A stretch of 64,000 bases of DNA, from the sequence record NC_061443.1; one strand, given 5' to 3'. Below are positions 10,970 through 60,796 of this stretch, piece after piece; the stretch's first letter is position 1, and each line of letters begins with the position of its first letter. Under the pieces are notes generated by a model. The model saw only the letters and a program-made list of their open reading frames with translations, had not been told where the DNA came from and did no database searches. Both the position numbers and the translations under genes were made by a program.

Positions 10970-11326
10970 TTAGGTATTTACAGATTCTGTGGAGCGCTGC
11001 CACACGACGAACTTGACGTTCAACGAATGCTCGTCAGTTAGGGCTGCTGACCTAGGGTCATGTCTGTAAGGGTATCGTTGCTCCTGTTGCCAAAAATAAG
11101 CTGGTGGCACAATAGTTCGAACTGGGTTCGGCACCTGCATGTAACTGTGCGTTTCAATCAGTACCAGATTGTCAATGCGGAGAACACCAGGGACCTCGAA
11201 CACTGAAGGCAGATTAGGACCAGCACCGTCTGCCATGACGCCGTTCATATAGTCCACCAGCGCTTTAACAAGTAAGCGACCAGCAGATATACTCAGTGTA
11301 AGATTGTACTCTGTGCGGAATTCCAT
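10970..11326 (-). CDS. Hypothetical protein carrying the N-terminal LSISA tag
   Basis: 118 aa ORF with AGGAGA RBS; MEFRTEYNLTLSISAGR. Confidence 0.6.
   Translation of the reverse strand: MEFRTEYNLTLSISAGRLLVKALVDYMNGVMADGAGPNLPSVFEVPGVLRIDNLVLIETHSYMQVPNPVRTIVPPAYFWQQEQRYPYRHDPRSAALTDEHSLNVKFVVWQRSTESVNT
10975..10983 (-). promoter_or_regulatory. CTGTAAATA motif (class 1 phage promoter candidate)
   Basis: Exact copy 26 nt upstream of the DnaC-like gene; one of 10 exact copies found. Confidence 0.65.
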
Positions 11327-11342
11327 GGTGTTCTCCTGATTA

Positions 11343-11714
11343 TTACATCAGCGCCAGTTCAGGGTCGATATACGTGTACGTGAATACGACGTTCCAACCA
11401 GAAGCGGCATCTTTGTTTGGGTGGTAACGGAAGCCGTAGATCATCAGCTTGCCTTTAGTATCAGGCTCAAGCGTAGGCTCATAAACAAGCCATGCTTCTT
11501 CCAGCTTCATCTTCTCGGCAATGTCTTTAGACCATCCGTCGAAGTCATACGGACCTTCTGGAACTTCCCACGACAGTGAATGCTTCTGCCAATGTTCGGC
11601 CTGCATATCAGTGTCTTTGGAAATCCAGTCCAGATGGGTAACGCCCATGTGATAGGCAATGGCGTGTGCATAGCCTCGCTCTTTCATGTAGCGTTGCAGT
11701 TGATCAAGACGCAT
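11343..11714 (-). CDS. Hypothetical protein (start corrected to MRLDQLQ at 11714)
   Basis: AAGGAG RBS upstream of the ATG, which overlaps the end of the upstream gene. Confidence 0.6.
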   Translation of the reverse strand: MRLDQLQRYMKERGYAHAIAYHMGVTHLDWISKDTDMQAEHWQKHSLSWEVPEGPYDFDGWSKDIAEKMKLEEAWLVYEPTLEPDTKGKLMIYGFRYHPNKDAASGWNVVFTYTYIDPELALM

Positions 11715-12024
11715 TAGGTTGCTCCTTAAAGCGCGGGAATACAGTAACGCTAACACGCGTAGAATCCTTTTCGTACTCACGCTCATTGTGAGAAACAAGC
11801 AGGACGTCAGTGACCTCCAGAGTGTTTCGAATGAGGATAAGTAACTGCCCAACAACGGACAAAGGATGGATATAGTTGGAGACAATCATATTGATCTCTG
11901 TTACCTGATCAGGATTGCCTACACTAACATCTCCATCCCATTCTTCTACGCGCATACACGCACGAACTGCCTCACTCTTTAACAGGTCCATCTCAAGAGT
12001 GAAGGGTAAACGCTCTTTCATCAT
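11704..12024 (-). CDS. Hypothetical protein
   Basis: 106 aa ORF with AAGGAG RBS; CTAATTT motif at 12060-12066 upstream. Confidence 0.6.
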   Translation of the reverse strand: MMKERLPFTLEMDLLKSEAVRACMRVEEWDGDVSVGNPDQVTEINMIVSNYIHPLSVVGQLLILIRNTLEVTDVLLVSHNEREYEKDSTRVSVTVFPRFKEQPNAS

Positions 12025-12059
12025 AAACTCCTTATAGGCTGCTAAAAGAGACAGACTAT

Positions 12060-12066
12060 AAATTAG
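12060..12066 (-). promoter_or_regulatory. CTAATTT motif (class 2, putative late promoter)
   Basis: Upstream of 11704..12024; one of 10 exact copies found. Confidence 0.5.
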
Positions 12067-12527: not shown

Positions 12528-12528
12528 G

Positions 12529-14666: not shown

Positions 14667-14668
14667 AT

Positions 14669-20347: not shown

Positions 20348-21094
20348 TTACATTCGAAGCTCGGCGGCAGTACGTTCGCCTTTCTTAGCAGCAGCGGCAA
20401 TCTCTGCGTCAGTCGCGTCTTTGGTAGCCAGCAATTTGATGACGTTTTGAATGGAACGCAACTCACCAAGATGAATCTGAACTTTCTTGACCTTTTTCAA
20501 ATGGTCGCCGATGAAGGTCATCAGCCAGCCTTTCTGCTGCATGACAACAGCTACTTCCAGTTTCTTATACTGGAAAGAGAACTGCTTGCCAGAAGCATGT
20601 AAGAACTGACCCGCTCCTGCTACTGGTTCAACCGCACGAATGAAATCCAGTGCGTAGTCCTGAGCGTTTTGACGACGCAAGGAAGAGAAGGCAGGAGAGA
20701 ATGTAGTTGTGTTGACTACAGGCTTGATGCTTTTACTTGCGCGTACGGGCTTTCCCACTGTGGCATTCGCAGCCTCAGGTTTGACCTTGATTGCACGAAG
20801 CGCGTTGATGGTAGCCACCAGCGTTTTCGCTTTATACAGGTTCTTGATTGCAGTCACGGCGTTCTTACCCGCAGCTTTCTTGGCGAAGGCTGTAGTGGCG
20901 TCAGTGTCTTTCAGGATATCGAGAACGGTTTCGAGCTTGGACGTGTCCAACTCTTTAATCTTCGTCAGTTCGTCGATGCGTTTAATCAGAACTTTGGCGT
21001 TCTTGCCGAAGAGGATATCAGCGTTCGCCACCTGAGCTTTAGTCGCGGCAGAGATAGACACAACTGCACCGCTATTCATTGTCATGTTGTACAT
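20348..21094 (-). CDS. Basic Lys/Ala-rich protein with N-terminal VSISA tag (putative internal head protein)
   Basis: MYNMTMNSGAVVSISAATK; K/A-rich; AAGGAAC RBS. Confidence 0.6.
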   Translation of the reverse strand: MYNMTMNSGAVVSISAATKAQVANADILFGKNAKVLIKRIDELTKIKELDTSKLETVLDILKDTDATTAFAKKAAGKNAVTAIKNLYKAKTLVATINALRAIKVKPEAANATVGKPVRASKSIKPVVNTTTFSPAFSSLRRQNAQDYALDFIRAVEPVAGAGQFLHASGKQFSFQYKKLEVAVVMQQKGWLMTFIGDHLKKVKKVQIHLGELRSIQNVIKLLATKDATDAEIAAAAKKGERTAAELRM

Positions 21095-21714: not shown

Positions 21715-24700
21715 TTACACTGCCTTGTTCTTGGTAGCAGTAAGTTTCAGACGGTCAAGAGCCGTCGTCACTTTCTTGATGTTCGTGATGCTGTAGCCAG
21801 CTTTCACGATCTTGTTGATACGTGCTTTAGCGCCAGCGACATTCTTCACGAAACCAATCCACATACCAGGAGAGGAGTCGAAGGTACCGAACTTACGGGT
21901 GTTTGGAATCTTCGTACCGATGAAGCGTTTCATCTGTGGGTTCGTGTTCAGGTCGAACATGATACGCAGACGATCTTCCATCACCATCGGGTATGCCTTG
22001 ACGTGTTTCTTATCAGAGGCTGCCTTATGGCGAATCAGGAAGAACTGCTTCAACTGCTCCTGAGCTTTCAACGCCAACTTAATGTTGAAGCCCATACGAG
22101 GCGTAGACTCGTCAAAGAAGTCCAGCACAAACTCCAAACGCTTCTCGGAAGGCTTGTCGAATGCCAGTTTCTTCTTAGTCTCGATGAAGTCGAGCATCGC
22201 TTCGAAGTCAGAGTAGTAGGCACAGTCGTAATACACGTAGTCACCGAACTCCACAAAGTCGAAGTCCTTGAGAGCCTTAGCATCAGGGTCGGTAGCGTTC
22301 GCGTAAATTGCCACGAAGCCGTTATACACGGTAGGAGTCAGTTCGAGTGCCATATCAGCACCGCCAACGTCATCCAGAACCGCAGCGGCAACAGGTTTCT
22401 TACGACGAGTTGTGTTATCCAACGCAGGCAGTTCCGCAGGCTTACGACGACGAACACGACCAGCAGCCTCAGCAACACCTTCGTTGATTGGCTTACCTTC
22501 TGCCTTGTTCTCGGTACGTTTCTTGGCACGAGCGGTCTTACGCGCTACGGCCACAACCTTCTTCTCTGTCTCAACCGTGTCGGCAGTCTCAGTCTCGTCC
22601 TGAATGGTGTCTTCAACTTCAACACGATTCGCTTCGGCAGTAGCACGTTTGCGGTCTTTCTCATTTGCCCACGGCTTACGGACTTCGAAGAACTTCTTGA
22701 GATCAGACTTATCAACTTTAGTTGCGATATGTACCTTCGCAGCAGGGAAGCTAACAGTCTCGCCTGTACCAGCCAGACGCACACGCACGGTACTGATTGG
22801 ACTGTCTGCACGGAGCTTGCCGTCAACAGTACGCACAGTCACAGACACGATAACACCATTACCGTACTCAGTCACAACAGGTGCACGGTTCAGAGAGTCT
22901 TTCAACCCTTCGCCGCTCGTGAAGTTACGGTTACGCGCCCAGTCAAGCAGACGCTCAAGGCCCCAGCCGTAGCGATCAGGAATCTTCTGGTTAGCAACAA
23001 ACGGAGTCTGTTCCATAACACGGAAGTCATTCAGAGCAGGCGTTGACGGCAGTGCTTGCATTGCTGCAATCGTCGTCTTACGCATCTCCTGGAATTCCTG
23101 AGACTCGATTTCGTTCAGGTCACGCTTCGCAAGGAAGTAGTCCTGGAAGTCAGCCATTGTGTTGTTATCGATCAGGAGCTTGGCGCTCATTTTGATCGGG
23201 TCCAACTTGTACTGGTCGAGTGCTTCGTAACGCTGGTTACCTTTCTCGTCGAAACGAGTTTTCTCCAGTGTCTTCCACATCAGACGAGCGACCTTACCAA
23301 CTTCAAGGGTCTTGTTCGTCATTACCCAGTCAATGAACACAACTTCACGAGCCATGTCGCCTGGCTTACCGTCTTCGTCCAGCTTCGCAGCAGCAACGTC
23401 AGGCCGGAAGATACGCGCAGTAGACTGATCGTAAGTACCCGGCGACCACGGTGTATCGCAGCGGATGATACGGCTACCCATCTGCATGTTGTGGCCTTCG
23501 GAAATTGCCTGCTCGTTCGCAATCAGAATCTGGACGTTGTTGTCCGTCTTGAATGCGTCGAGGTTAGCGTCTTTGTTCTGGCCCAGCTTGCCTACTTCAC
23601 CGTGATACACTACAGCAACTTTCTTGTAGTTCTCAGGCAGAGCGTTGTAAATGGCGTTAGCAGAACGAACGTAGCGCGTGAAGACAATCAGCTTACCCTG
23701 CACCTCTGGCTTCCAGTATTCTGGATCATCTGGTGGAGGAGTCATGGACGGAGGCAGTGCTTGACGCTTGAACTCTTCGGACTGCTTACGGGCCAGATAC
23801 TTCTGACCGTTATAGACAGCAATGTCCAGCTCACGAGGAGTAACGCCCGGCTTCCAGTCGAAGATCTGTTGCTCACCAACCATCTGGTCACGTTCAGGCT
23901 GCACTTCGAAGTGCTTCTTGATACGGTCGATGATGGTCATGACTTTAGCGGATGTGAAGTTGGTAACGCCGGCAGCTTCAAACGTCATACGCGCAACGTC
24001 ATCGCCCATCGGGTCAGTCAACATCATTTCCATACGCTGGAAGTACATGTTCAGGTCAGCATTACCTGCAAGCAGTGCGCCGAGGTCATCGCCTTCTTCG
24101 ATATCGTCTTCGTCAATGTCAGAAGCGTTGTCACCATCGCCACCAGCATCTTCGTCGTCTTCATCACCTGCAGCAGAAGCCTTGCGCTTCGCAGCATTAG
24201 CCGCGTCTTGCAATTTCTCCAGTACCTGTTCGTACATCGCGTTATACACCTCTTGGTGCAACGCGGAGTTAGGAACAGTTGGGCCATCAATCTCAACCTG
24301 AATGAAGGTATCAATCGGGTTCGGCAGCATGAACGCCCAGTGCTTACGTTTGAACGAGATGAACGCAGTATGGTTCGCCATACGAGAGTGAGCACGACGA
24401 ATCATTTCGATATCGTCTTTCGCACCGTCATACGCCACGTCAAGGTTATCGCCGAACATAGCAGGCGTCATCAACGCAGCCTGACCAACGATATCACGCA
24501 CACGGTCGGTTACCAGCGTACCTGTAGCGATACGTGCATAGCGAACAGACGGAGCAGTGAACACCGCTTTGGTGTTGAAGTGTACCTGAGAGCCTGACTG
24601 GCCACCAGAGAAGTTCTTCACCTTGTGCGATTCATCGAGCAGCACGTAGCTGAAACGGAAGCGGTTAACAAACTCTACCGCGCCACGAATACGCACACGC

Positions 24701-27567
24701 ACACCACCGACGTCAACGTTAAACGTACCAGTCTGCAAGAAGCTCAAGCCCACGATGTAGATAGTGTTGCGAGGAGCCTGCTGGATAACGTCGTACATGC
24801 GGTCTTCGCCCCACGTGTTAACCGTGTCAGCAGTGATAGGCACTGCGTTCCAGCCGTCAACAACTTTGTGGAGATCGTCACACCAGTTCGATACTAGGTT
24901 AGACGGACAGATAATCAGAGGACGAATGGTTTCTTCACCCAGATCATCCAGCTCTTTAATCAGAGCAGCAACGTCAGTCAGACCGATGATAGTCTTACCA
25001 CCGCCAGGCGCGATGAAGATAGTCGCAAAGCGTGGACGACGACGCAGCGTTTTGTGCGCTTCAACCTGATGCGGGAGTAACGCAGCACCATCTTTCAGGC
25101 CAGGAATACGGATATCGTCAATCGTGATACCGCTGTCTGGTTTAAGTTTCTCAATCTCCACCTCAGCCTGTTCGAAGTATTCGAGTGACTTAGGAATCAC
25201 TTCGCTATACATCGCGGCGAACGGCAGGATGATCTGTTGCAGACGGTCAGAGCCAGGAGCGGTGTCGCTTTCAATCAGAGAGCTAAACAGCTTCTTACGG
25301 TCAGACTTGGTGAGTGCGTTTGCCATTTCACGATAGAGCGCACCACCGAAGTAGTTGTTCAGTCGCGCCATGTCAGACAGCTTCGACGTTTCACCCATCA
25401 CGAAGTAGTGAGTGTGCGAAGGCAGGGACTCGGTGGCAGCCTGAATGCTCCCCATCTCAGTGAGAGAGGTAGAGATCAGGTTAGAACCACGCAGACCAGC
25501 AGCATCGTTCAGCACACGAATCATGATGCGCATCAAAGTCAGTGCAGGACGTTCGAGAGCAATATCAGGAACAGAGAAGTCGTTCTCGATCAGATTCTGA
25601 TACAGGTTCTGGTCCATCGGACTTTCTGCCAATGAAGCATTCTCTGCGTCCATACCGATCGCAACACGAGCCTGTTGAATCAGAGTTTTCAGATCAGGAA
25701 CTTGTTTGTTCTTGAGCATGAACTCATAGGTCTGACAGGTAGATGCAATAATCTGAATCAGTTCGTGGACGTTAGAGCCTTCGGTGCTATTGTACTTGAT
25801 GGTGCTTTCTGACACAGCTTCCACAAGACGGCCTGAACCAGACTCAGCTTTCGCCGCTTCGATCATCATGTCGTTAGACGTGCGATACGCAGGCATCATA
25901 CCAGAAGATTGGTTGTGATGAATGCTACCGATAACGCTAGACACAGAACGGAAGTTAGGCGCTTCACCAGGCTCTGCGAAGTCGTAACCGAGTGAGTCAG
26001 CGACGTCCAGTGAAGTAGGAGATTTCATACCAACGGTACGAGTTTCTTTCACATCGAGGCCACCGCCGTTCGAGGTGTTAACGATCAGCGCGAAGTCAGG
26101 GTCGATACCGATACACACGTTGCTGAAACGATTAAGGGTTTTAGCCTTAGCCTGAACGTCACGGTCGAAGTCCAGATTGCCGTTCTGAATGGCGAACATG
26201 TTGGTACGCAGGGTGTCGTGGTCAGTAGACAGCGGCACGCCTTTCTCAAACAGATTTTCCAGAACATCGTTCAACGTAGTCTCGTAGTTACGGACCATGT
26301 CAATGTCGATATCTTCACGACGAGGCAGCACTGCGAGAGTACCGTTCGGCATGATTGTCAGACCATTATCGTCAGCAACAACATCGTTAACCACGTAACC
26401 AAACTTCTCACGGAGTTTCTTCAACTCAGGCAGAGTGGTCGCAGATGTAACGTAACGCGGGATACGCGCAGCACGGGTGATACCCGTACGAGTTGAGCCA
26501 GCAACACGGAAGTAGTAGCTCGCCCAGCCTTGGAACCAACGATACAGACACATGGTCTGCGTGTCGGCGCCCTGACTGATATACTCCACCAGCTCTTTCT
26601 CGAAGTTAACGATCAACCCGCCTTCAACGCGAACGTCGATAGCAAGTGCCACTTCGTTGAAATCAACAGGCGTGTCGTGGCTGATCTTCATCGCTTGGAT
26701 CTTGCGATCAATCATCGCCTTGCCCGGCACTGGACGAATACCGATAGTCATGAAGTCGCCGAGTGCTTCTGCGGCAGACTTATCCAGATTACGGAAAATG
26801 TCGATATCAATGCCATTCATCGCAGGGTGAATGGAACGCAAAGCGGCGTTATAGATAGACCAGTCTTTATCGAGCGGGATACGGACCATCTTCGTATCGA
26901 AGGCATTACCGTTTGTGCGTTCAACACCGAAGATATCTTTGTACAGAGTCTTCGCCACACGAATAGCAGCCTGTGCAATCTCAGAGCTGTACGTGCGGAT
27001 GTTAGCTGATTCGAATGCTGCGTCGTTGTCTACGCGAGGACGATCGCTACCCTGATTGTTCAGCACGTTAAAGTTACCATGCGATGCCAGCGGGCTGGTA
27101 GGAACCGGCGTGCCTGACATGATGATATCTTTACCGCCTGGGAAGCGCGTACTGTTTTCGATGATGGCGCCAGACGATGCAGACAGATGCTCAGCCAGTG
27201 AGGTCTTAATCTCACGACTCAACTTGTCTCCGTTCAGCGTCATGTTGATGCGCATTGTCGCCAGCTCAATGTTCGATTTGATACGCTTGGTAAAGTCTTC
27301 AGGAGAGACTTCCAGCATATCTTCGAACTCGGCACCGTTAACAACGATGTAGCTGATCAGGTCGAATGCGGCATAGATACGAGCGACGGTAGATGCGGTG
27401 AACACTGCGAGGGTTTCGTAGTTACGACGAGACTTCCCTGTAGCGTACATCTTCGACATTTTACCATCGAACTCGGGCGGCAACGCACGGATAGCAAGAG
27501 CCTGACTAAACGTGTCGGCGATCTGCTGGGTTGCGGTTGCTGAGGCACTGATCATTTGATTCATCAT
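21715..27567 (-). CDS. Giant (1950 aa) SNF2/SWI2-family helicase-like ATPase with N-terminal ISASA tag
   Basis: LLPHQ, APGGGKT, LLDESHKVKN, ATGT, LIVFTRY, ISEGHNMQ, WSPG..DQSTARIFR match SNF2 motifs Q, I, II, III, IV, V and VI. Confidence 0.88.
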   Translation of the reverse strand: MMNQMISASATATQQIADTFSQALAIRALPPEFDGKMSKMYATGKSRRNYETLAVFTASTVARIYAAFDLISYIVVNGAEFEDMLEVSPEDFTKRIKSNIELATMRINMTLNGDKLSREIKTSLAEHLSASSGAIIENSTRFPGGKDIIMSGTPVPTSPLASHGNFNVLNNQGSDRPRVDNDAAFESANIRTYSSEIAQAAIRVAKTLYKDIFGVERTNGNAFDTKMVRIPLDKDWSIYNAALRSIHPAMNGIDIDIFRNLDKSAAEALGDFMTIGIRPVPGKAMIDRKIQAMKISHDTPVDFNEVALAIDVRVEGGLIVNFEKELVEYISQGADTQTMCLYRWFQGWASYYFRVAGSTRTGITRAARIPRYVTSATTLPELKKLREKFGYVVNDVVADDNGLTIMPNGTLAVLPRREDIDIDMVRNYETTLNDVLENLFEKGVPLSTDHDTLRTNMFAIQNGNLDFDRDVQAKAKTLNRFSNVCIGIDPDFALIVNTSNGGGLDVKETRTVGMKSPTSLDVADSLGYDFAEPGEAPNFRSVSSVIGSIHHNQSSGMMPAYRTSNDMMIEAAKAESGSGRLVEAVSESTIKYNSTEGSNVHELIQIIASTCQTYEFMLKNKQVPDLKTLIQQARVAIGMDAENASLAESPMDQNLYQNLIENDFSVPDIALERPALTLMRIMIRVLNDAAGLRGSNLISTSLTEMGSIQAATESLPSHTHYFVMGETSKLSDMARLNNYFGGALYREMANALTKSDRKKLFSSLIESDTAPGSDRLQQIILPFAAMYSEVIPKSLEYFEQAEVEIEKLKPDSGITIDDIRIPGLKDGAALLPHQVEAHKTLRRRPRFATIFIAPGGGKTIIGLTDVAALIKELDDLGEETIRPLIICPSNLVSNWCDDLHKVVDGWNAVPITADTVNTWGEDRMYDVIQQAPRNTIYIVGLSFLQTGTFNVDVGGVRVRIRGAVEFVNRFRFSYVLLDESHKVKNFSGGQSGSQVHFNTKAVFTAPSVRYARIATGTLVTDRVRDIVGQAALMTPAMFGDNLDVAYDGAKDDIEMIRRAHSRMANHTAFISFKRKHWAFMLPNPIDTFIQVEIDGPTVPNSALHQEVYNAMYEQVLEKLQDAANAAKRKASAAGDEDDEDAGGDGDNASDIDEDDIEEGDDLGALLAGNADLNMYFQRMEMMLTDPMGDDVARMTFEAAGVTNFTSAKVMTIIDRIKKHFEVQPERDQMVGEQQIFDWKPGVTPRELDIAVYNGQKYLARKQSEEFKRQALPPSMTPPPDDPEYWKPEVQGKLIVFTRYVRSANAIYNALPENYKKVAVVYHGEVGKLGQNKDANLDAFKTDNNVQILIANEQAISEGHNMQMGSRIIRCDTPWSPGTYDQSTARIFRPDVAAAKLDEDGKPGDMAREVVFIDWVMTNKTLEVGKVARLMWKTLEKTRFDEKGNQRYEALDQYKLDPIKMSAKLLIDNNTMADFQDYFLAKRDLNEIESQEFQEMRKTTIAAMQALPSTPALNDFRVMEQTPFVANQKIPDRYGWGLERLLDWARNRNFTSGEGLKDSLNRAPVVTEYGNGVIVSVTVRTVDGKLRADSPISTVRVRLAGTGETVSFPAAKVHIATKVDKSDLKKFFEVRKPWANEKDRKRATAEANRVEVEDTIQDETETADTVETEKKVVAVARKTARAKKRTENKAEGKPINEGVAEAAGRVRRRKPAELPALDNTTRRKKPVAAAVLDDVGGADMALELTPTVYNGFVAIYANATDPDAKALKDFDFVEFGDYVYYDCAYYSDFEAMLDFIETKKKLAFDKPSEKRLEFVLDFFDESTPRMGFNIKLALKAQEQLKQFFLIRHKAASDKKHVKAYPMVMEDRLRIMFDLNTNPQMKRFIGTKIPNTRKFGTFDSSPGMWIGFVKNVAGAKARINKIVKAGYSITNIKKVTTALDRLKLTATKNKAV

Positions 27568-30951: not shown

Positions 30952-30958
30952 AAATTAG
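30952..30958 (-). promoter_or_regulatory. CTAATTT motif
   Basis: Intergenic, 24 nt before 30928. Confidence 0.6.
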
Positions 30959-34568: not shown

Positions 34569-34575
34569 AAATTAG
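34569..34575 (-). promoter_or_regulatory. CTAATTT motif
   Basis: Intergenic, before 34536. Confidence 0.6.
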
Positions 34576-38578: not shown

Positions 38579-38585
38579 AAATTAG
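38579..38585 (-). promoter_or_regulatory. CTAATTT motif
   Basis: Intergenic, before 38547. Confidence 0.6.
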
Positions 38586-39132: not shown

Positions 39133-39141
39133 TATTTACAG
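39133..39141 (-). promoter_or_regulatory. CTGTAAATA motif 6 nt before the SLOG gene ATG
   Basis: Exact copy. Confidence 0.6.
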
Positions 39142-43698: not shown

Positions 43699-44304
43699 TT
43701 ATACCAACGCGCGGCCTGGGAGATCAAAGTTTTTACCCGCAGAGTAATCGCCCAGCGCGGCATACAGGGAATTACGCAGCATCGACTGGATGATATCGGA
43801 GTTATGTGCAGAGGCGTCTTTGAATGCGACCTCAATAGAATCCGTTCTTGGATTCACTACAGCATAACGCAACGGGCAGACGGTTTGTGCTTCACACCAT
43901 GCGTCGATTCGCGGCTGCAAGTCAGGCGTAAGGGGAATGCGAAAATCAGCGAGAGCAAAGATGACGCTCTGAATCGGCGGAGGCGCCGACTGCGACATAT
44001 ACTTGCCATTCGGACTAAGACGTTCCATGGCCATGGAAGCATCATAGATTGACTGATACCCTTCACCAACGGTTTTGATATCAGAGAGTTTGAAGCTATG
44101 CGTTGTCAGGCCTTTACGAATGAGCTTGGCGATCTTGAGATCGTAATCACCAGAATCATCAGTAGCGAAGCAGACGAACGCGTAGAAAGAGATACCTTCG
44201 GTCTCACGTAGCAGTCGATGGTCTAATACGCGAAAGCCCACGACACTCGTAAGTGCCTGGGCTGTTACCTGTGGTCCCTTAGAAAGAGAGACAAAGATTT
44301 GCAT
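43699..44304 (-). CDS. Hypothetical protein with VSLSK tag and internal SQSA site
   Basis: MQIFVSLSKGP; YMSQSAPPP midway. Confidence 0.65.
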   Translation of the reverse strand: MQIFVSLSKGPQVTAQALTSVVGFRVLDHRLLRETEGISFYAFVCFATDDSGDYDLKIAKLIRKGLTTHSFKLSDIKTVGEGYQSIYDASMAMERLSPNGKYMSQSAPPPIQSVIFALADFRIPLTPDLQPRIDAWCEAQTVCPLRYAVVNPRTDSIEVAFKDASAHNSDIIQSMLRNSLYAALGDYSAGKNFDLPGRALV

Positions 44305-44645
44305 TAACGCATTGCTTTGAGTGCTTTCTTAGCTTCGGCCAGAGTCGGGTAAAACTCTTGGTCGTCGTTAATCTCAGGCTCAATCTGGAAGCCCACTTCG
44401 AGAATAGCGAAGCCAGCATCTTCATCTTCATCAGCAACAACGACGCCGAAACGAGCAGTGCTGTTCATGATGTTGATGAAGCGGAAGTCCAGAATATCAT
44501 TCGGGCCGCCGATATCAGAAGGCATACCGTCAGCAGTAATCAATGCAAACAGGTCCTTCTTGTCGATACCTTTAAAGAAGGTAGTAGCAGCGGCAGACGA
44601 CGTGGATTTAACGGTTTCTTCGATGTTCAGTTTGATAAGACTCAT
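44304..44645 (-). CDS. Acidic hypothetical protein with MSLIK...STSSA N-terminus
   Basis: MSLIKLNIEETVKSTSSAAA parallels MSLIKINLTEVVASESA. Confidence 0.6.
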   Translation of the reverse strand: MSLIKLNIEETVKSTSSAAATTFFKGIDKKDLFALITADGMPSDIGGPNDILDFRFINIMNSTARFGVVVADEDEDAGFAILEVGFQIEPEINDDQEFYPTLAEAKKALKAMR

Positions 44646-45255: not shown

Positions 45256-46140
45256 TCAGATGGACAATCTTGTAGCCTTGAACTTAAATGTAGGGCGTGT
45301 TCCTGGAATGAGTTCATAGGGCACGTCATAGTCATTGTCGTCAAGCATGACCAGCGTGTTTAGTGCTTTCCAGTAGAAAAGGCCGAACGCCAGATTGACT
45401 GTTTCATCCGCAGCTTCCCTGGGCGCCCAGAAGAGTCCATCATCTCTGTAAGGTAGGTGCATGTCCGCAAAGTTACCACCATCAGTACCAACAGAACAGG
45501 CTTTCATTGCCATGGCATATTGGAAGTTAACATTCGTAGTCGTATACACATCTACAGGCGATATAGGCGGATAACCGTAACCTGTTCTAAACTGATCAGA
45601 GTTTGTTGGAGCAGTAGTCGTGACAGAACCATTATATGTTTTCAGATGCAGCGTACTAGGGAAGCGTCCGAACTGACTGTTTGTGCCAGACGTTGCGACA
45701 GCAGCGCACTTAGGGAAGTACATCTTAACATCAAAAGGACAGTTAAAAACTATCGTGCCTTTTCGAATTGTGTAGTCAGGGAAATACTCAGCTCTTGTGG
45801 CATCATAGCTTTGGTAGTCAGTGATATCAGGGTCCGACACATGCGACGAAAAGCCGACGGTGTTCTCCTGCATTATGATATCGTAGGTCGCGGGTGCCCA
45901 GTTCTTATCTGAGGCATACTTTGCGAAGGTTGGGAAGTATTTGTTTCCGTGCTGCCCTGCGACTGGATTGAGCTTACTGCCTACGCCAAGAACCGAGCGA
46001 GCCCTGTGAGCATTCTGCTTCGCAAAGGTCATATCCCGCATTTGAGTTTTGGTGATGCCGTCTCTTGCATCAAAGAATAGAACATTAGGCATGTTCGTTT
46101 CTTTCGAGGCCAAGCCAAAGAGTGTTGCTATGTATTGCAT
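45256..46140 (-). CDS. MQY-family paralogue 3
   Basis: MQYIA...VLFFD, ARSVLG.GSKLNPV.G..GNKYF.TF.KYA, DETVNLA, LIPGTRP. Confidence 0.55.
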   Translation of the reverse strand: MQYIATLFGLASKETNMPNVLFFDARDGITKTQMRDMTFAKQNAHRARSVLGVGSKLNPVAGQHGNKYFPTFAKYASDKNWAPATYDIIMQENTVGFSSHVSDPDITDYQSYDATRAEYFPDYTIRKGTIVFNCPFDVKMYFPKCAAVATSGTNSQFGRFPSTLHLKTYNGSVTTTAPTNSDQFRTGYGYPPISPVDVYTTTNVNFQYAMAMKACSVGTDGGNFADMHLPYRDDGLFWAPREAADETVNLAFGLFYWKALNTLVMLDDNDYDVPYELIPGTRPTFKFKATRLSI

Positions 46141-50236: not shown

Positions 50237-50436
50237 TAGAAATACTCGACAGTTTCTTCCTGCACAAGATTGGTACCGTGAGTCTGCGCAAACACATCGA
50301 TCTCGTCTTGAGTGTAAGGCGTTGAGGACTCGGCGATAACATCATACGAAACAGATTCATCGCGCGTGTTAGACACAACGGGTTTGATGATGCGCCACAG
50401 CGGCAAGGAGATTGGCTCACGCTTGACTGTATTCAT
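50236..50436 (-). CDS. Small hypothetical protein (start corrected to MNTVKRE)
   Basis: TAATG coupling on both ends. Confidence 0.55.
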   Translation of the reverse strand: MNTVKREPISLPLWRIIKPVVSNTRDESVSYDVIAESSTPYTQDEIDVFAQTHGTNLVQEETVEYF

Positions 50437-50645
50437 TAGTGGAATACTCCTGCAGGCTCTACCCATAGGTCTGGTGCATTGTACTGCGCACGAAGTTCAT
50501 TCATCTGATCGTCAGACAAAGGACGGTCGGAAACGAGAATGCACTGAGGAACTTTTTCCTCTTGACCTGTTACAGGATGAATGTCGCGGTCGTGGCGCAT
50601 GACATTCCAGCGTTTTGATACTGAGATATTGATGGTACGTTCCAT
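50436..50645 (-). CDS. Small hypothetical protein (start corrected to MERTINISVSK)
   Basis: AGGT RBS-like; CTGTAAATA at 50684-50692. Confidence 0.55.
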   Translation of the reverse strand: MERTINISVSKRWNVMRHDRDIHPVTGQEEKVPQCILVSDRPLSDDQMNELRAQYNAPDLWVEPAGVFH

Positions 50646-50726: not shown

Positions 50727-51011
50727 TTAGGCAGCCCCTGCGAATACTTTACGCACCCCATTATCCAGATAGTGGTCCGCATAGAAAGGTCCGTTCTCAT
50801 TTTCAATACCAATACGACGGCAGAGTTGGCGACGCAAGCGCTTAGGCCAAACCATCTCGTCTTCCAGCAAATGGATAACAGCAGGCATAGCTTCCAGTTG
50901 AGTCATTGTCAGGTCACGAATCTTGTCGTCAATCCTGCAGAGTTCAGCGTAGTCCTGTTCAGGTGTAGGCACAGAACGTTCAGGCTTAGAAAGGTCTACT
51001 GTGATTTCCAT
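50727..51011 (-). CDS. Hypothetical protein
   Basis: 94 aa; MEITVDLSK resembles the MEIFVSLSK tag; followed by a hairpin/U tract at about 50710-50739. Confidence 0.6.
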   Translation of the reverse strand: MEITVDLSKPERSVPTPEQDYAELCRIDDKIRDLTMTQLEAMPAVIHLLEDEMVWPKRLRRQLCRRIGIENENGPFYADHYLDNGVRKVFAGAA

Positions 51012-51457
51012 CAGTATCTCCGTGGCTTCTTGATTTTCTTAATCGTGGACTTCGGACGCTTGATTGCCCGCAGTGCTTTACGTGCTTCGATAATCTTCTT
51101 GGACAGCTCTGAGCGTTGCTTCTTGACGGCATCCGTGTCTTGCTCTGTACCTTTCAGTTTATCCAGACGATTCCACTCATTGACCAAACGATCAACCACA
51201 CTGGCACGGGATACACGCTGTTGGTTAGTACGTACAATGTCCTGTTGCTTCTTTACGGAGTCACGGGTGTTGTTCACTTCGTCACGCGCAGACTTCACAC
51301 CTTTCGTGTCACCGTCAGATTGCTTGTCGTTCAGTTTCTTACGGGCAACCTGTGAACGTCTTTGAGCACCCTTGAGATCATCTTTCGAGTTCTCCAGGCT
51401 GACCTTTGTGTCTTCGAGTGGGCTGGTACGCGCACTCAAACTGATAAGTATTTTCAT
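51011..51457 (-). CDS. Basic coiled-coil protein with ISLSA tag
   Basis: MKILISLSART; K/R-rich C-terminus. Confidence 0.65.
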   Translation of the reverse strand: MKILISLSARTSPLEDTKVSLENSKDDLKGAQRRSQVARKKLNDKQSDGDTKGVKSARDEVNNTRDSVKKQQDIVRTNQQRVSRASVVDRLVNEWNRLDKLKGTEQDTDAVKKQRSELSKKIIEARKALRAIKRPKSTIKKIKKPRRY

Positions 51458-51589: not shown

Positions 51590-52126
51590 TCATGCGGATT
51601 GAAGTTGAATGATTTCTTCGTCTTCGATATCCGCGCCAGACCACGAACGAATCACGGATGCGTTACCACGATTGCCTGTCAACATTGTCTTAACTGCTGG
51701 ACGTGCTTCGCGTTCTGCATAGTGGTCGATAAGAGCTTTGTCATTAGCGAACCACAAAATGGAGTGACCACCTTTAGGGCAGACCAGGAATTGTGCTGGG
51801 TGCTGAGGTACGTTCAGCGTCATGTAGAAGTCGCCTGCGCCTTCAGGACCCATCATAGGCATAGGCTTCATAATCTGCTGGAAGTCTTTTGCATCTTTCA
51901 GACGCACATCACCCAACAACCAAACAGCACCTTCTTCACCCTCACGCACGGCGCTCAATGTGCCTTTACGCGAAGTGATAGATCCGAATACGTCTTGATC
52001 GAATCGAGCCAGCCCAAAGATAAGCGATGCGAGTTTCTTCAAATCAGGAGTAGTGCATGGACTGTCGATTTTAGCCATGCCCTCAGACCCGACTGTAATC
52101 TTCGATAATGAAACAAAGATTTCCAT
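51590..52126 (-). CDS. Hypothetical protein with VSLSK tag
   Basis: MEIFVSLSKIT; CTAATTT motif at 52163-52169. Confidence 0.65.
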   Translation of the reverse strand: MEIFVSLSKITVGSEGMAKIDSPCTTPDLKKLASLIFGLARFDQDVFGSITSRKGTLSAVREGEEGAVWLLGDVRLKDAKDFQQIMKPMPMMGPEGAGDFYMTLNVPQHPAQFLVCPKGGHSILWFANDKALIDHYAEREARPAVKTMLTGNRGNASVIRSWSGADIEDEEIIQLQSA

Positions 52127-52162: not shown

Positions 52163-52169
52163 AAATTAG
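52163..52169 (-). promoter_or_regulatory. CTAATTT motif
   Basis: Intergenic, after a terminator, before 52126. Confidence 0.6.
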
Positions 52170-52225: not shown

Positions 52226-52232
52226 CACTTAT

Positions 52233-53559: not shown

Positions 53560-53567
53560 TATTTAGA

Positions 53568-53857: not shown

Positions 53858-53896
53858 CTATTCTCCTGAAACGATTTATCTCGTTGCTCTGAATTA

Positions 53897-53905
53897 TATT
53901 TACAG
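53897..53905 (-). promoter_or_regulatory. CTGTAAATA motif upstream of 53660..53857
   Basis: Exact copy. Confidence 0.6.
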
Positions 53906-53948
53906 ATTACTGGAGTAGTCACAAAAGATTAAAGTCAGACAATTCTTA

Positions 53949-54195
53949 AACTCCAATAGCAACTCACAGGAATTGTTATTGGAGTTCACCCTCAGGCAGA
54001 TGACGGTCTGCGCGAAGGTGTTCTCCCCGTGTCTTTCGAATGCGCCGACACGGTAGCGCTCGCGGTCTTACACTCTTATCCTGCATCAGGTCGGTCGGCA
54101 GGTAGCAGGTACCTGACGCAAAGAGCAGCCGCTATCGGCCATTAGCGATAACGCGGTGTTACGCTTAACGGCCTAGGTGACTCTGGCCGAGTCTG
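53949..54195. ncRNA. Candidate structured non-coding RNA (unassigned family)
   Basis: ORF-free in an otherwise gene-dense genome; at least six adjacent hairpins (see findings). Confidence 0.35.
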
Positions 54196-54197
54196 TA

Positions 54198-54251
54198 CAA
54201 AAAAAAAGAGTTCGGCCTATCCCCAATTCGGCAAAAAGAACAGGCCGAACT
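54198..54251 (-). terminator. Terminator with alternative (bistable) pairing
   Basis: Minus strand AGTTCGGCCT-N23-AGGCCGAACT followed by CTTTTTTTTT; a second GCCGAAT lies inside the loop. Confidence 0.7.
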
Positions 54252-54296
54252 AAACAGTCAACACACACTCCATGTGCGCTGTTTTGTACTGTAACA

Positions 54297-54325
54297 AATT
54301 AGAAACAACTTGAAATATTCAGACA
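54297..54325 (-). promoter_or_regulatory. Sigma70-like promoter TTGTCT-N17-TCTAAT, overlapping a CTAATTT motif
   Basis: Minus strand AAGAA TTGTCT GAATATTTCAAGTTGTT TCTAAT TTG. Confidence 0.5.
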
Positions 54326-54329
54326 ATTC

Positions 54330-55261: not shown

Positions 55262-55263
55262 GG

Positions 55264-56810: not shown

Positions 56811-56818
56811 AACGACCT

Positions 56819-57355: not shown

Positions 57356-57362
57356 TGTAACC

Positions 57363-57566: not shown

Positions 57567-57605
57567 ACGTTATTCCTTACATGTGATTGCTCTAAGTTTA
57601 CAGAA

Positions 57606-58130: not shown

Positions 58131-58133
58131 ACT

Positions 58134-59750
58134 TCACTCCGAGAATATCTTTTTATCGTAGAACTTCTTGCACACAAACTCTGCATTTGGGCTAGATATA
58201 CTTTCACCCTCCATGCAAAGTAAAGCCCCGTCGTGCTCAAGAGAATACACACCCTTGACATTCGGACAATTAAGAATTGCATCAAACAGGAACATACTCT
58301 CCCAGCCTGATAGCATATGGTTGAGTACGCGCTTCTTAATCTTCTTGTCAGTTTCATCAGGATCTGGATCATAGACAGACCCCGTTGCGCATTGCAACAC
58401 ACCATACTCCGGTCGATGCGCATTTTTATTTTTACGGAACTTAGCCCGGTACACAGCCAAGAGGTCAGTGATTGCTAGCCAGAGCGGTGTCACCCTCGTG
58501 TTCCAGTCAATCAATTCATCTTTTACTTTATACTTGGGCATGAAGCGTGTCAGTTCCTTGAAGACGTTGCTGTAGGACGTCACCTCCAACTGACCTGCCG
58601 AGAATATAGTGGCGTACAGGCATACCTTAGCCGCCCGCTTATCGAGTCCGAGTATTCGCGCAATATCTTCCACCGAGCTAACGGTATCAAACATCGCACA
58701 CTCAATCCCATTAGCCTCGAACTCCTTTCGCAACACGTTGAACTGGCTGGACTTCATATCCCAGTTAGTCCCTATCGTGTAGCAATCCTCTTTAAGACTC
58801 GAGGGTAAGTTCTGGAACCCACCACCAACCTCAAACAGACGTCCACCAATTTGCGACAGCTTGTACTTAGGCCAATAGCGCACTACGAGAGGAGACTCAC
58901 TCACAATCTGAACAGGCCCTGACACAATCGTATCGAGTAACGTCTTCACCTGCAGGTACTGCTTTCGCGCCTTGTGATTAGCGATTAACGATCTATCTTC
59001 CAAATAAGCAAGTATAGGATCGAGATTCACTTCATTCGGCAGGAGCTTATCTAAAACTGCTCGGTATAACGCACGGCCTTTAAGCTCCTTACCGTTACCT
59101 CTGTCACGATTACGGTCCAATGAAGACAGGTCATGTACGGGGCGTTTGAAAGGTAGCTTAGAGTTTTTCTGAATCTGCGACCACACCGTTACCCCATAAT
59201 CTTCTCTAAGAATCTTGAGAGGACTATAGAATCGGATGCGATGCAGAATATCATAATGCGATTGAGGCTTGAAGTGGCCGTACATGCCATCTAAGACTTC
59301 AGGACGCATCCTAAACTCGCGGCAAAGCCCCTTAGCCTTGTTATAGTTCTTCGTTTCGAAAATATTGGCTCTCAACCAGTCCAATGACCTGTCGAAAGTC
59401 CCCTTTTTGGACTTAGCGTATTTGCCTACCGCTATATTGTCCCCGCCACGTCGATGCCCGAATACCATCGGTAGCTTTTCTTGACCTAAAGAACGTGGGA
59501 ACGGGACCCAGACCCGCCCAAACTTCTTCTTTTTATGTTTACGAGCAGGATATAGGCTGCATTGAAGAATGTGCCAGAAGAAAAGGTTCAATTGAGCACG
59601 AAACTCACGCTCTCCGCTTTCAGGCCCCGTGTACGGGCAAGCGTTTATCACGTTGTCTCGCACCCATAAAACGACTTCTTTCTCCTGGTAAGAGGGGCTC
59701 GTTATCAAAACTGGCCCGTTGCCGGAAACGATTCGTTTTTTCATGTTCAC
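58134..59750 (-). CDS. Divergent family-A-polymerase-fold protein lacking an exonuclease domain
   Basis: GGRLF...FQNLP..LK (cf. TGRLSS..PNLQNIP), motif A WDMKSSQF, motif B KRAAKVCLYATIFS, NHMLSGWES (cf. N..iQgsaAD), motif C LEHDG. Confidence 0.6.
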   Translation of the reverse strand: MNMKKRIVSGNGPVLITSPSYQEKEVVLWVRDNVINACPYTGPESGEREFRAQLNLFFWHILQCSLYPARKHKKKKFGRVWVPFPRSLGQEKLPMVFGHRRGGDNIAVGKYAKSKKGTFDRSLDWLRANIFETKNYNKAKGLCREFRMRPEVLDGMYGHFKPQSHYDILHRIRFYSPLKILREDYGVTVWSQIQKNSKLPFKRPVHDLSSLDRNRDRGNGKELKGRALYRAVLDKLLPNEVNLDPILAYLEDRSLIANHKARKQYLQVKTLLDTIVSGPVQIVSESPLVVRYWPKYKLSQIGGRLFEVGGGFQNLPSSLKEDCYTIGTNWDMKSSQFNVLRKEFEANGIECAMFDTVSSVEDIARILGLDKRAAKVCLYATIFSAGQLEVTSYSNVFKELTRFMPKYKVKDELIDWNTRVTPLWLAITDLLAVYRAKFRKNKNAHRPEYGVLQCATGSVYDPDPDETDKKIKKRVLNHMLSGWESMFLFDAILNCPNVKGVYSLEHDGALLCMEGESISSPNAEFVCKKFYDKKIFSE

Positions 59751-59810
59751 ATCATGATTACCTGATTTTTTCTATCGTTTCTTTACAGATAAAGACTCAG
59801 CCCCTCCGAA

Positions 59811-59877
59811 AGCTACAGCTACAGCTACAAGCTAGGAAGGAGGTAGTACAGATAGCTGGCTAGGCATGGCATGGCAC
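59811..59877. repeat. Short tandem repeats: (AGCTAC)3 plus AGCTA, and GGCAT-GGCAT-GGCAC
   Basis: agctacagctacagctacaagcta at 59811-59834; ggcatggcatggcac at 59863-59877. Confidence 0.8.
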
Positions 59878-60028
59878 GCTTGAAACATACAAGCACATGT
59901 ACATCTTTAGGCGGCACGTTTCAGAGACATGCAAAATGAAAGAACCATACTCCTACTAACCCACAGCAGGGCGTATGTGGCCCATAGGTGCAGATCTAGC
60001 AGAAAACCCTAGGTCGTCTAAACCGTGT

Positions 60029-60150
60029 AAATTTTCCGTCAAAAACAGTCCGTTTTTTAACCAAACGCCTGTTTTGACTCTGAAAATGCGGGAAAATCCG
60101 AGAAAAATCAAGGACTTTCCCGTTTTGAAACGAAAAATCAGATCATTTTT
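60029..60150. other. Helically phased A/T tracts (intrinsically curved DNA; candidate ori or pac site)
   Basis: A3-6/T3-6 tracts start near 60029, 41, 53, 63, 72, 83, 93, 103, 116, 123, 133, 146 (about 10-10.5 bp period). Confidence 0.65.
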
Positions 60151-60796
60151 TCTGCGAAACGCGCTTCCCGAGCTTAACTCCGATTTGAGTCAGGATGCGT
60201 TTCACTGTATCGCCGTCATGTTCTTCCATTGCAGCGCCCAAACGCTCGCCCTGTTCACGCGATAGCTCAGGCATAATCATTTTAAGCATCTGCGAACGCT
60301 GTTTCGCTGCTTTAGACTTGCCTTTCGAGACAGACACGCCCTCATTCGCTGCTAACGCACTGCTAATCGCCTTTTGCACACGACGATTGCCGAAGATATC
60401 TCCGAATATGTCACCGAACAGGTCTTTGAACGACATACCGCCGCTCATGATATCGTTCTTAGTGAAACGCACAGGCTGTCCGAGCGCGTTTGTGCTATGG
60501 GTCGATTCGACCTGATTCGTTGTACGCCCACCAGCACGGAAGTTCTCGTCAGGACGGGAGGCTTTACCCTCTGCACCCGGCTTAGTGTTACCGTTGCGCA
60601 AATCAGGGTCACCTTCAACAGCCTTATTCGGATCGAACATATCGTCCGCTGTTTCGCTCTGGTTAGGGTCGAAGGGAATCTTGCCTGTCAGCTTATTCGG
60701 GTCCGGCCAGCTATCAGGAATGTCAGACGCTGGTTGTGGCTTGTTTGTCATATCGCCATTTGCTTCGCTGCTCAGGCTGATCTTAATGCGAGTCAT
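60143..60796 (-). CDS. Hypothetical protein with ISLSS tag, disordered Pro/Asp-rich N-half
   Basis: MTRIKISLSSEAN; second AISSA site; AGGAG RBS. Confidence 0.65.
   Translation of the reverse strand: MTRIKISLSSEANGDMTNKPQPASDIPDSWPDPNKLTGKIPFDPNQSETADDMFDPNKAVEGDPDLRNGNTKPGAEGKASRPDENFRAGGRTTNQVESTHSTNALGQPVRFTKNDIMSGGMSFKDLFGDIFGDIFGNRRVQKAISSALAANEGVSVSKGKSKAAKQRSQMLKMIMPELSREQGERLGAAMEEHDGDTVKRILTQIGVKLGKRVSQKK

Follow-up and report, generated by a model that had tools for sequence, protein, structure and literature searches.

A Ser-x-Ser octapeptide on unrelated proteins as a probable capsid-targeting and maturation signal in the jumbo phage pEa_SNUABM_2

Diverse internal proteins of phage T4 have as their sole common feature a short N-terminal peptide, the capsid-targeting sequence (CTS), which directs them into the scaffolding core (PMC3012670). 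Prohead protease gp21 removes this peptide. Phage SPN3US proteins are cleaved at A-x-E, where P4 is Val and P1' is Ser (PMC10052503). DarB of phage P1 is an anti-restriction helicase/methylase of 250 kDa whose first 30 residues are enough to bring a reporter into the capsid, and the Dar proteins have no common N-terminal consensus (PMC9024508). Here, we describe an octapeptide tag, M-x-[ILVM]-x-[ILV]-S-x-S, at the N-termini of unrelated proteins encoded in a window of 64,000 nucleotides (the whole stretch of DNA analysed). The window matches bases 124001-188000 of Erwinia phage pEa_SNUABM_2 (NC_061443.1 / MZ443786) at 100% identity; this phage is a jumbo myovirus of the genus Alexandravirus with a genome of 265,442 bp. 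The tag is probably a T4-CTS-like peptide that combines capsid targeting with the function of a maturation propeptide.

The likeness to T4 lies in a short shared N-terminal peptide, in one consensus that is also used in capsid and scaffold proteins, and in a protease of the same structural family as T4 gp21. T4, however, cuts after Glu, at (Leu/Ile)-x-Glu, whereas the pEa_SNUABM_2 motif has small residues at P1 and P3 (Ser; Ala in relatives), its tag of 8 residues has a consensus of its own, and its protease, unlike that of T4, carries a conserved Cys/His cluster between Ser181 and Glu236. Packaging through the pEa_SNUABM_2 tag is predicted from sequence. As in phiKZ, 201phi2-1 and SPN3US, whose proteases act on numerous head and ejection proteins at a single motif that is also repeated in long propeptides of head proteins, one motif would serve many proteins. 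The phiKZ-like phages, in contrast, cut after Glu and have propeptides of mostly 111-254 residues (the shortest 20-24), against an octapeptide with Ser at P1 here, and about 80% of SPN3US head proteins are uncut. pEa_SNUABM_2 belongs with another jumbo-phage group, subgroup 2.2 (including PaBG, Lu11 and phiRSL1), whose members share a gp21-type peptidase (PMC7824862). Its capsid protein and protease are related to this PaBG/Lu11/phiRSL1 group and not to phiKZ.

Compared with the Dar proteins of phage P1, which lack a shared consensus, one consensus is common to many proteins here. Encapsulin cargo-loading peptides are short, portable, small/hydrophobic peptides that send unrelated enzymes inside an HK97-fold shell, as the tag is proposed to do; in contrast to the proposed tag, most of them sit at the C-terminus, and they dock straight onto the shell protein and stay uncleaved. 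Herpesvirus assemblin, a capsid maturation protease of the same fold superfamily as the phage enzyme and its closest analogue in specificity, cleaves between small residues preceded by a hydrophobic one, which gives small-residue specificity a precedent in the protease superfamily; assemblin belongs, however, to an animal virus with another substrate set and no N-terminal cargo tag. A small-x-small (Ser-Ser) specificity would be new relative to T4, phiKZ and SPN3US, all of which cut after Glu. Searches of published work on capsid targeting, prohead protease motifs and this group of phages, key subscription papers excepted, turned up no description of the tag or of a Ser-x-Ser specificity.

The protein table comprised all 336 annotated pEa_SNUABM_2 proteins, with 71 genes in the window, nearly all of them on the minus strand. 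The exact-register tag occupies residues 1-8, the core motif is hydrophobic-x-S-x-S, and expected counts were taken from the internal frequency of the same hexamer in the proteins. In the window, 5/71 genes carry the exact-register tag against 0.014 expected (P 4e-12). Genome-wide, the tag is found in 10/336 proteins against 0.065 expected (P 3e-19), an enrichment over background that bears out the shared N-terminal signature proposed in a first-pass annotation of this DNA. All 15 N-termini quoted in that annotation are present on the minus strand at their positions, and all are starts in RefSeq NC_061443.1 except that of gp185, which is annotated from 34530 and not from 34536. The genes concerned are given below in window positions, with a slash at the putative cleavage position; CTAATTT is a candidate promoter element treated further on.

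36658-38547, minus strand: gp188, 629 aa, canonical tag MKLMVSMS encoded at 38524-38547; CTAATTT at 38579-38585
41471-41980, minus strand: gp194, 169 aa, canonical tag MEVFVSLS at 41957-41980; translationally coupled to gp195
43699-44304, minus strand: gp197, 201 aa, canonical tag MQIFVSLS at 44281-44304; start overlaps the gp198 stop
51011-51457, minus strand: gp209, 148 aa, canonical tag MKILISLS at 51434-51457
51590-52126, minus strand: gp210, 178 aa, canonical tag MEIFVSLS at 52103-52126; CTAATTT at 52163-52169
60143-60796, minus strand: gp221, 217 aa, +1 tag MTRIKISLS at 60770-60796; operon behind CTAATTT at 61935-61941
21715-27567, minus strand: gp177, SNF2-type helicase of 1950 aa, N-terminus MMNQMISAS/A at 27541-27567
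50436-50645, minus strand: gp207, 69 aa, +2 tag MERTINISVS at 50616-50645
50727-51011, minus strand: gp208, 94 aa, degenerate tag MEITVDLS at 50988-51011
41980-43026, minus strand: gp195, 348 aa, 16-residue class, MSLIKINLTEVVASES/A at 42979-43026
43051-43689, minus strand: gp196, 212 aa, gp195 paralogue, MAMIKIALASAIASES/A at 43642-43689
44304-44645, minus strand: gp198, 113 aa, MSLIKLNIEETVKSTS/S at 44598-44645
33241-34530, minus strand: gp185, 429 aa, ...EVSSIS/A at residues 10-14 (34489-34530); CTAATTT at 34569-34575
20348-21094, minus strand: gp175, 248 aa, possible site ...AVVSIS/A at residues 11-15; unproven
10970-11326, minus strand: gp164, 118 aa, LTLSIS/A at residues 9-14; unproven, possibly chance

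Read to residue 9, the five exact tags of the window are MKLMVSMSA (gp188), MEVFVSLSA (gp194), MQIFVSLSK (gp197), MKILISLSA (gp209) and MEIFVSLSK (gp210). Outside the window, exact tags begin gp121 (MKITVSLSA), gp134 (MLILLSESA), gp150 (MILSVSASH), gp232 (MEIYVSLSQ) and gp241 (MEMLVSLSH). The tag is shifted by one residue in gp221 and gp177 and by two in gp207; that of gp177 falls into exact register if the second ATG serves as the start. In gp208, the first Ser is replaced by Asp. The core motif starts within residues 1-20 of 29 proteins against about 12 expected, and the deeper sites of gp164, gp175, gp185, gp195, gp196 and gp198 are not significant one by one. In orthologue alignments of gp185, gp195/196 and gp198, the S-x-S pair is fixed and its neighbours vary (gp185 has a second site, LLSVS/A, at residues 56-60). 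Among the 15 examples put forward earlier, gp185, gp195/196 and gp198 are thus backed by their orthologues, and two or three, gp164 and gp175 among them, are unproven. A second N-terminal class comprises gp195, gp196, gp198 and gp250, with a MSLIK-type start followed by hydrophobic-x-S-x-S-A; its second Ser is residue 13 of gp250 and residue 16 of the other three. There are two putative propeptide classes, the 8-residue tag and this 16-residue MSLIK class.

Across 100 distinct tags, the consensus is M-[KEQ]-[ILV]-[FLQ...]-[IVL]-S-[LI...]-S-[AKS]. The Ser codons in tags include TCA, TCT, TCC, TCG, AGC and AGT (both TCN and AGY), and the Leu codons TTG, TTA, CTG and CTT (both TTR and CTN). Because Ser and Leu codons vary within tags, the constraint acts on the peptide and not on DNA or RNA, and a nucleotide-level signal is ruled out. 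A Sec or lipoprotein signal peptide is ruled out as well, since only three hydrophobic residues precede S-x-S, where such peptides have a hydrophobic core of at least 10 ahead of their small-x-small signal-peptidase site; Glu or Gln occupies position 2 in 33/100 distinct tags, unlike the basic n-region of signal peptides, and the polar linkers or cytoplasmic enzyme domains downstream of the tag also count against a signal peptide.

The carriers fall, by Pfam, PHROG and NCBIfam, in unrelated families or in none. A shared fold or homology was rejected because all-against-all BLAST relates only gp195/196 (and gp198 at the N-terminus) among the tagged proteins. The earlier statement that they have no other similarity thus mostly holds, the departures being the paralogues gp195 and gp196 (E 1e-23), whose N-terminus resembles those of gp198 and gp250. 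The Nudix domain of gp121 begins at residue 22 and the KMPT-N domain of gp150 at residue 16 (Pfam), and gp177 contains SNF2 and Helicase_C domains (helicase core at residues 854-1388), with no methyltransferase domain found by Pfam. In the AlphaFold2 model of gp188 (predicted local distance difference test score, pLDDT, 91.9), residues 1-6 score below 50 and the first helix starts at residue 12. As regards the function of gp188, Foldseek returned only helical-repeat noise from the PDB and only uncharacterised jumbo-phage proteins from BFVD. None of the replication enzymes carries the tag, as the first-pass annotation had noted (polymerases gp174/gp163, clamp gp172, clamp loader gp211, SbcC gp205, SbcD gp187 and helicase gp169).

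Further, the tag is retained in orthologues that have diverged widely elsewhere. gp188 belongs to a large uncharacterised family in which more than 30 orthologues retain M-E-[IL]-x-V-S-L-S-A. Most distant homologues begin M..EF..EALKPSQYR and lack the tag, and several separate subgroups begin M-x-hydrophobic-x-hydrophobic-S-x-S-AL.PSQYR, so the tag replaced the first N-terminal turn in some lineages only. The gp208, gp209 and gp210 orthologues of Yoloswag, JA29 and fHe-Yen9-02 are 35-40% identical overall and keep their tags: MRIFVSMSG (fHe-Yen9-02, 40% identity) and MQIVFSLSK (Dickeya phage JA29, 35%) for gp210; MEILISLSQ (Yoloswag), MEIVISLSM (Yersinia phage fHe-Yen9-02) and MQVLISLSK (JA29) for gp209; and MQIFVSLSN (JA29) and MEIVISFSA (Yoloswag), both intact, for gp208. 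The annotated Yoloswag orthologue of gp210 is without a tag. Orthologues of gp194 in uncultured contigs, at 31-37% identity, retain it (MRIFISLSS, MQIQLSLSG), as do those of gp197 down to 25% identity, with the last Ser changed to Ala in Alexandra (MEIFVSLAK). For gp177, hydrophobic-hydrophobic-S-x-S-[AK]-T is found among residues 1-9 of 26/26 orthologues (43-93% identity), which differ in the residue between the two Ser (T, V, M, A or E) and in the number of residues after Met. Similarly, about 10 orthologues and paralogues of gp195 keep hydrophobic-x-S-E-S-A in an otherwise variable N-terminus, gp198 orthologues retain V-K-S-x-S (x = T, E, Q or V), and gp185 orthologues at 61-69% identity retain S-x-S (INSIS/T, VASLS/A, QLSAS/V).

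In Yoloswag and pEa_SNUABM_5 (L027_2, L028_2), tagged gp197-like and gp195-like modules form one open reading frame (ORF) of 545 to about 640 aa, with the junction ...MSLIRLTIPGQELVSES/AKAP; cleavage at S-E-S, if it occurs, would make the product a polyprotein. The gp177 orthologue of fHe-Yen9-02 (P0019) has 2458 aa against about 1950, with an extra PF14528 (LAGLIDADG-type) domain that suggests an intein or homing-endonuclease insertion.

The core motif was also scanned over the whole proteome, with the first 12 residues excluded and each protein compared with its own shuffles. By far the top of the proteome is gp142, with 15 hydrophobic-x-S-x-S sites against about 2 expected (z about 10); its orthologues in JA29 (13 sites) and Yoloswag (14) compare with about 2.6 expected and a shuffle maximum of 7-8. 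Next come gp182 (5 against 0.9), gp139 (4 against 0.5) and the portal protein gp006 (4 against 1.3). In gp142 and its orthologues, the control patterns S..S, SS, T.T and hydrophobic at P6 are near expectation. Neither of the phiKZ-type and T4-type Glu motifs, hydrophobic-x-S-x-E and hydrophobic-x-[SAG]-x-E, exceeds expectation in gp142 or its orthologues, where the enriched pattern has Ser in both small positions. A phiKZ-like S/A/G-x-E propeptide system was rejected because [SAG].E after a hydrophobic residue is not enriched and the relatives of capsid protein and protease are not those of phiKZ.

Locus L005:5861-7906 (record 105861-107906): gp142, 681 aa, between the capsid cluster (gp140, gp141) and gp143 with gp144
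L012:6314-8245, L013:6190-8178, L014:6137-8179 and L019:6288-8192: gp142 orthologues
Window 30122-30922, minus strand: gp182, 266 aa, five internal core sites against 0.9 expected; CTAATTT at 30952-30958

The gp142 sites include four FDSES repeats in an acidic region, VQSQS/S, VISDS/S, FNSLS/S, LVSLS/R, LASVS/N and LMSKS/E. The protein is 25% acidic and has CxxC pairs, and the group carries 13-16 protease-type sites. It is annotated as an 'ATPase' (PHROG 20988), and Pfam finds no ATPase domain in it; gp142 is probably a scaffold or core protein that is mis-annotated across the group. In the alignment of the capsid protein gp140, S-x-S is conserved in a variable stretch at residues 31-36, LALS[SE]S/TGE, and around residue 68 orthologues read LVHSTS/A, LVHSES/S or EVSES/H. 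A cut at residue 68 would remove 18.6% of gp140, which resembles the loss of roughly 20% by the PaBG capsid protein on maturation (PMC7412058). Also, gp139 has a conserved NSVS/ in a variable stretch of its alignment, gp182 adjoins the head-tail connector gene gp183, and the N-termini in the alignment of tagged gp134 read MLILLSESA, MLFFVSVSA and MLLFISASA. At the level of sequence, the tag ends in the same consensus as the putative maturation sites of capsid, scaffold and portal proteins.

The protease gene lies outside the window.

Record 109106-109885: gp144, head-maturation protease (PHROG 18299 'head maturation protease')

By sequence, gp144 has no match in Pfam or the PDB. The structure examined was an AlphaFold2 model of an Alexandra protein 98% identical to it (pLDDT 82, predicted template-modelling score 0.81), and a PDB fold search with this model returned T4 gp21 (5JBL; probability 1.00, target template-modelling score 0.61, E 2e-3), the next match having E 0.8. 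By this model, gp144 is a prohead protease of the T4 gp21 fold. In a family alignment of 31 members, His124, Ser181 and Glu236 are invariant, and a Cys/His cluster (C191, C194, C206, H208) lies between Ser181 and Glu236. Most of the 31 members carry hydrophobic-x-S-x-S-F-[DS] at their own N-terminus (e.g. IRSES/FD, VESKS/FD, IPSHS/FD), and the most distant ones have S-E-[AC]-F or A-R-A-F there.

Two neighbours of the protease gene deserve a brief account. The gp146 family, which adjoins the protease, may be tagged in some phages: an upstream in-frame GTG extends Yoloswag YOLOSWAG_143 (L014:2764-3768) to 334 aa, beginning MKMLISLSQ, against the annotated 244 aa, and its PaBG counterpart begins MLLSLSLAS. 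Also, gp143 (L005:7985-9106) and gp150 (L005:15221-17083) both contain a KMPT-N domain (PF20294). The gp143 gene, flanked by those of the scaffold-like protein and the protease, encodes a HELAH zinc-peptidase motif; head maturation may involve another peptidase, of the metallo type, or such an enzyme may be packaged.

The distribution of the tag was followed in 80 viral contigs encoding gp188 relatives and in 79 loci around protease homologues. Strict tags begin 69/523 ORFs in 22 loci (1-7 each) and 0/1022 ORFs in the other 58 loci, and the tag-positive contigs beyond the cultured clade (L127, L128, L130, L170) also encode a gp144-type protease. The scaffold homologues of the Alexandra, Y3, Yoloswag and JA lineages have 11-16 Ser-Ser sites and 0-5 Ala-Ala sites. 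In comparison, the Lu11 homologue has nine hydrophobic-x-A-x-A sites (e.g. FRAVA/S, LVAVA/S), and those of L156 and L161 have 8 Ala-Ala sites. N-terminal tags in the Ala lineages read MFVALALA, MNIAIAAA, MKIFIALA, MEVFIALA and similar, and the combined Ser/Ala tag pattern occurs in 1/995 ORFs of unrelated viral loci. Over 18 lineages, the Ser fraction of scaffold sites correlates with that of tags (Spearman 0.50, permutation p 0.02, kinship ignored). Given the Ser/Ala shift in both scaffold and tags, the code is small-x-small with an upstream hydrophobic residue, and Ser-Ser is typical of this clade. The Ser specificity proposed in the first-pass annotation is better put as small-x-small, Ser prevailing in this clade and Ala in Lu11-like relatives. 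In four uncultured viral contigs, L052, L159, L161 and L170, 5-7 tagged ORFs lie within about 20 kb. Three of these cargo islands (L159, L161 and L170) surround the protease gene and the fourth, L052, surrounds a gp188 homologue, its tags being MKINLSISR, MKINISISA, MKIHISVSA, MRLLISISA, MKITVSLSS, MRIRISISS and MKIHISISS.

Many tagged genes had been placed downstream of a CTAATTT motif, which is the case for gp188, gp210 and gp185 directly and for most others through operons. Genome-wide there are 23 copies, 18 of them in sense and within 150 nucleotides of a downstream start, at distances of 29-77 nucleotides; in the window all 11 copies are on the coding (minus) strand and none is on the plus strand.

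12060, 15534, 30952, 34569, 35466, 38579, minus strand: CTAATTT, 7 nucleotides each
45247, 46187, 52163, 54296, 61935, minus strand: CTAATTT, 7 nucleotides each

The element precedes gp111, gp115 (annotated as a PAAR-motif protein), gp136 (orthologues annotated as tail sheath), gp100 and the endolysin gp199. It also precedes gp150, gp188, gp210, gp185 and gp182, as well as the operons that hold gp121, gp134, gp194-198, gp207-209, gp221 and gp177, and one-mismatch TAATTT variants precede the structural-region genes gp076, gp080, gp088, gp142, gp157 and gp159. CTAATTT is likely a late-promoter element. The phage encodes a sigma factor of its own, gp242.

Among the relatives, a virion proteome was accessible for PaBG only; it comprises 14 Coomassie-visible bands, band 1 being a 'RuvB helicase-like' protein of 221,161.95 Da (PMC7412058). 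Bands were assigned to ORFs by mass. The PaBG orthologue of gp177, with 1969 aa and a computed mass of 221,159 Da, corresponds to band 1, and its N-terminus is MGSLFTLNSLS/A. DarB of phage P1 is likewise a very large helicase-containing protein found in the head, and gp177 and the PaBG 221 kDa helicase may be functional analogues of it. Band 9 corresponds to PaBG gp83, which begins MLIKINLLEAVAAKA/L, a MSLIK-like start followed by an Ala-x-Ala site; gp83 was rejected as a relative of gp195/196, with no BLAST similarity past the N-terminal MLIKINL. Band 8 is a basic protein adjoining SbcD (record 139631-140629, computed 35,272.5 Da) without a tag. In the window, gp186 (34703-35395, minus strand) is Lys/Ala-rich and basic, lies behind a CTAATTT and adjoins SbcD, a position that matches that of the band 8 protein; gp186 is possibly a DNA-associated internal head protein.

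The capsid-targeting and cleavage function advanced in the first-pass annotation draws support from the sites in gp142, capsid protein, protease, gp139 and portal protein, from the gp21 fold and from the PaBG helicase. The octapeptide Met-(Lys/Glu/Gln)-(Ile/Leu/Val)-x-(Ile/Val/Leu)-Ser-x-Ser would be a transferable propeptide by which unrelated proteins are directed into the prohead during assembly, and its core (hydrophobic, x, small, x, small) would be the recognition motif of gp144. The tagged proteins would be made from the same TAATTT-type promoters as the structural genes. In the course of events that we infer for binding partner, packaging of each cargo, scissile bond and ejection, the exposed N-terminal strand would be bound by a core component, most simply the inactive protease or the scaffold, and the protein thereby enclosed in the prohead. 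The activated protease would then cut after the second Ser of the tag, and the same cut would fragment gp142 at about 15 sites and trim the capsid protein, the portal protein and the protease itself. Mature cargo would remain in the head and leave with the DNA. The MSLIK...hydrophobic-x-S-E-S/A class (gp195, gp196, gp198 and gp250) would end in the same site, and the predicted target peptides of gp144 are MEIFVSLSKITV, ELVHSTSANAG and DFDSESSDD.

Several observations weigh against this combined targeting and cleavage function. The tag and the scaffold motif differ, the scaffold sites needing a hydrophobic P5 with P4 and P6 free and the tags having hydrophobic P4 and P6 with P5 mostly hydrophobic. 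The tagged and conserved gp134 lies among tail-tube genes, the gap upstream of gp241 has no TAATTT element, and the gp232 operon stands behind a one-mismatch GTAATTT only. The co-variation of scaffold and tags is modest, with L150, L155 and L168 as exceptions. The PaBG capsid protein is without S-x-S at the second site, and since the untagged band 8 protein is in the PaBG virion, the tag is not the sole route into the virion. PaBG is alone among the relatives in having proteomic data; its canonical tags number only three or four, so that it neither confirms nor refutes the tag statistics.

That the motif has one role rather than two is unlikely, although it is the rival closest to the combined function. 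The tag could be a protease site or short pro-sequence, for example one that keeps enzymes inactive until they are inside the head, with targeting by other protein parts; the internal ...LVSES/AKAP junction of the fused Yoloswag ORF fits such cleavage, but a mere protease site would not account for the constant position of the motif, two residues after Met, in ten proteins of unrelated kinds. Alternatively, an uncut peptide could dock on shell or core, like encapsulin cargo-loading peptides. The head proteins show motif recurrence and conservation only, with no scissile bond, the extra hydrophobic P4 and P6 of the tag fit a binding strand, and the FDSES repeats of the acidic scaffold could be binding repeats; such docking would nevertheless leave S-x-S at the plausible capsid propeptide boundary and at the protease's own N-terminus unexplained.

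Much less probable is a short linear motif that has nothing to do with the capsid, either a degron that times proteolysis or a peptide that docks on a hub such as the beta-clamp gp172. ClpXP-type N-terminal degrons and Hda-like N-terminal clamp-binding motifs are precedents, the phage encodes a beta-type clamp and a clamp loader, which gp209 and gp210 adjoin, and the carriers include nucleic-acid enzymes (Nudix hydrolase, helicase). However, polymerase, clamp loader and nuclease all lack the tag, and 13-16 scaffold copies, the capsid, portal and protease sites, the scaffold co-variation and the PaBG helicase in the virion would be left unexplained. Finally, the absence of any functional tag, with the pattern due to a strand of common descent, a nucleotide signal, start misannotation or chance, is extremely improbable. 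gp195, gp196 and gp198 do share ancestry, and Shine-Dalgarno sequences are weak at several tagged genes; on the other side stand the exact-register statistics, the switching of Ser codons between TCN and AGY, the unrelated domains of the carriers, distant family members without the tag, and the absence of strict tags from all 1022 ORFs in unrelated viral loci.

If the combined function is true, a simple rule predicts from sequence which proteins a whole group of jumbo phages packages in the capsid and probably also brings into the host cell; in T4 and P1, such packaged proteins defeat host defences at the first moment of infection. The candidates would be gp177, gp188, gp194, gp197, gp209, gp210, gp221, the Nudix protein gp121 and the KMPT-N protein gp150. 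There would also be a new substrate specificity in the T4 gp21 protease family, drifting between Ser and Ala across lineages, and foreign proteins could be loaded into large capsids by means of just 8 residues, much as with the T4 CTS. A broader proposition, on which we are evenly divided, is that a large, mostly uncultured jumbo-phage clade (Alexandra, Y3, Yoloswag, Salmondvirus, fHe-Yen9-02 and further contigs of 130-320 kb) uses one N-terminal address, legible in the genome, that doubles as the site of a gp21-family protease whose specificity has changed from Glu to Ser/Ala. The address would consist of Met, x, three hydrophobic-biased residues, small, x, small, and its receptor would be the protease or the core itself. 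The reach of the tag system is unusual, as it can be read from the contigs of many uncultured jumbo phages. If this proposition is true, the whole packaged and ejected proteome can be listed from sequence alone, with a 220 kDa helicase, a Nudix hydrolase, the KMPT-N protein gp150 and the cargo islands (up to 7 tagged genes per 20 kb) as the listed cargo.

Other features of the phage and the window were recorded along the way. phiR1-37 was not among the relatives found for gp210, the capsid protein or gp177. Long non-coding gaps occur at window positions 53858-54329 (472 nucleotides) and 59751-60142 (392 nucleotides) in a region that is otherwise tightly packed; tRNAs were sought in the long intergenic gaps of the window and none was found, and the gap at 53858-54329 holds the CTAATTT at 54296. 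The RefSeq start of gp189 is at 38973 (121 aa), and a longer ORF from 39126 (window 38608-39126, minus strand, 172 aa) begins MEKLSFTGHRPQ...; because PHROG 289 matches residues 6-161 of this 172-aa ORF, the annotated start is probably too far downstream. gp190 (39136-40005), gp192 (40421-41248) and gp200 (45256-46140) are paralogues that all begin MQY(I/L). Further, gp155 (window 338-4348), a tail protein of 1336 aa, and gp158 (5661-6356) have a common C-terminal domain of 129 residues at 58% identity, and gp156 and gp157 are similar to the N-terminus of gp155.

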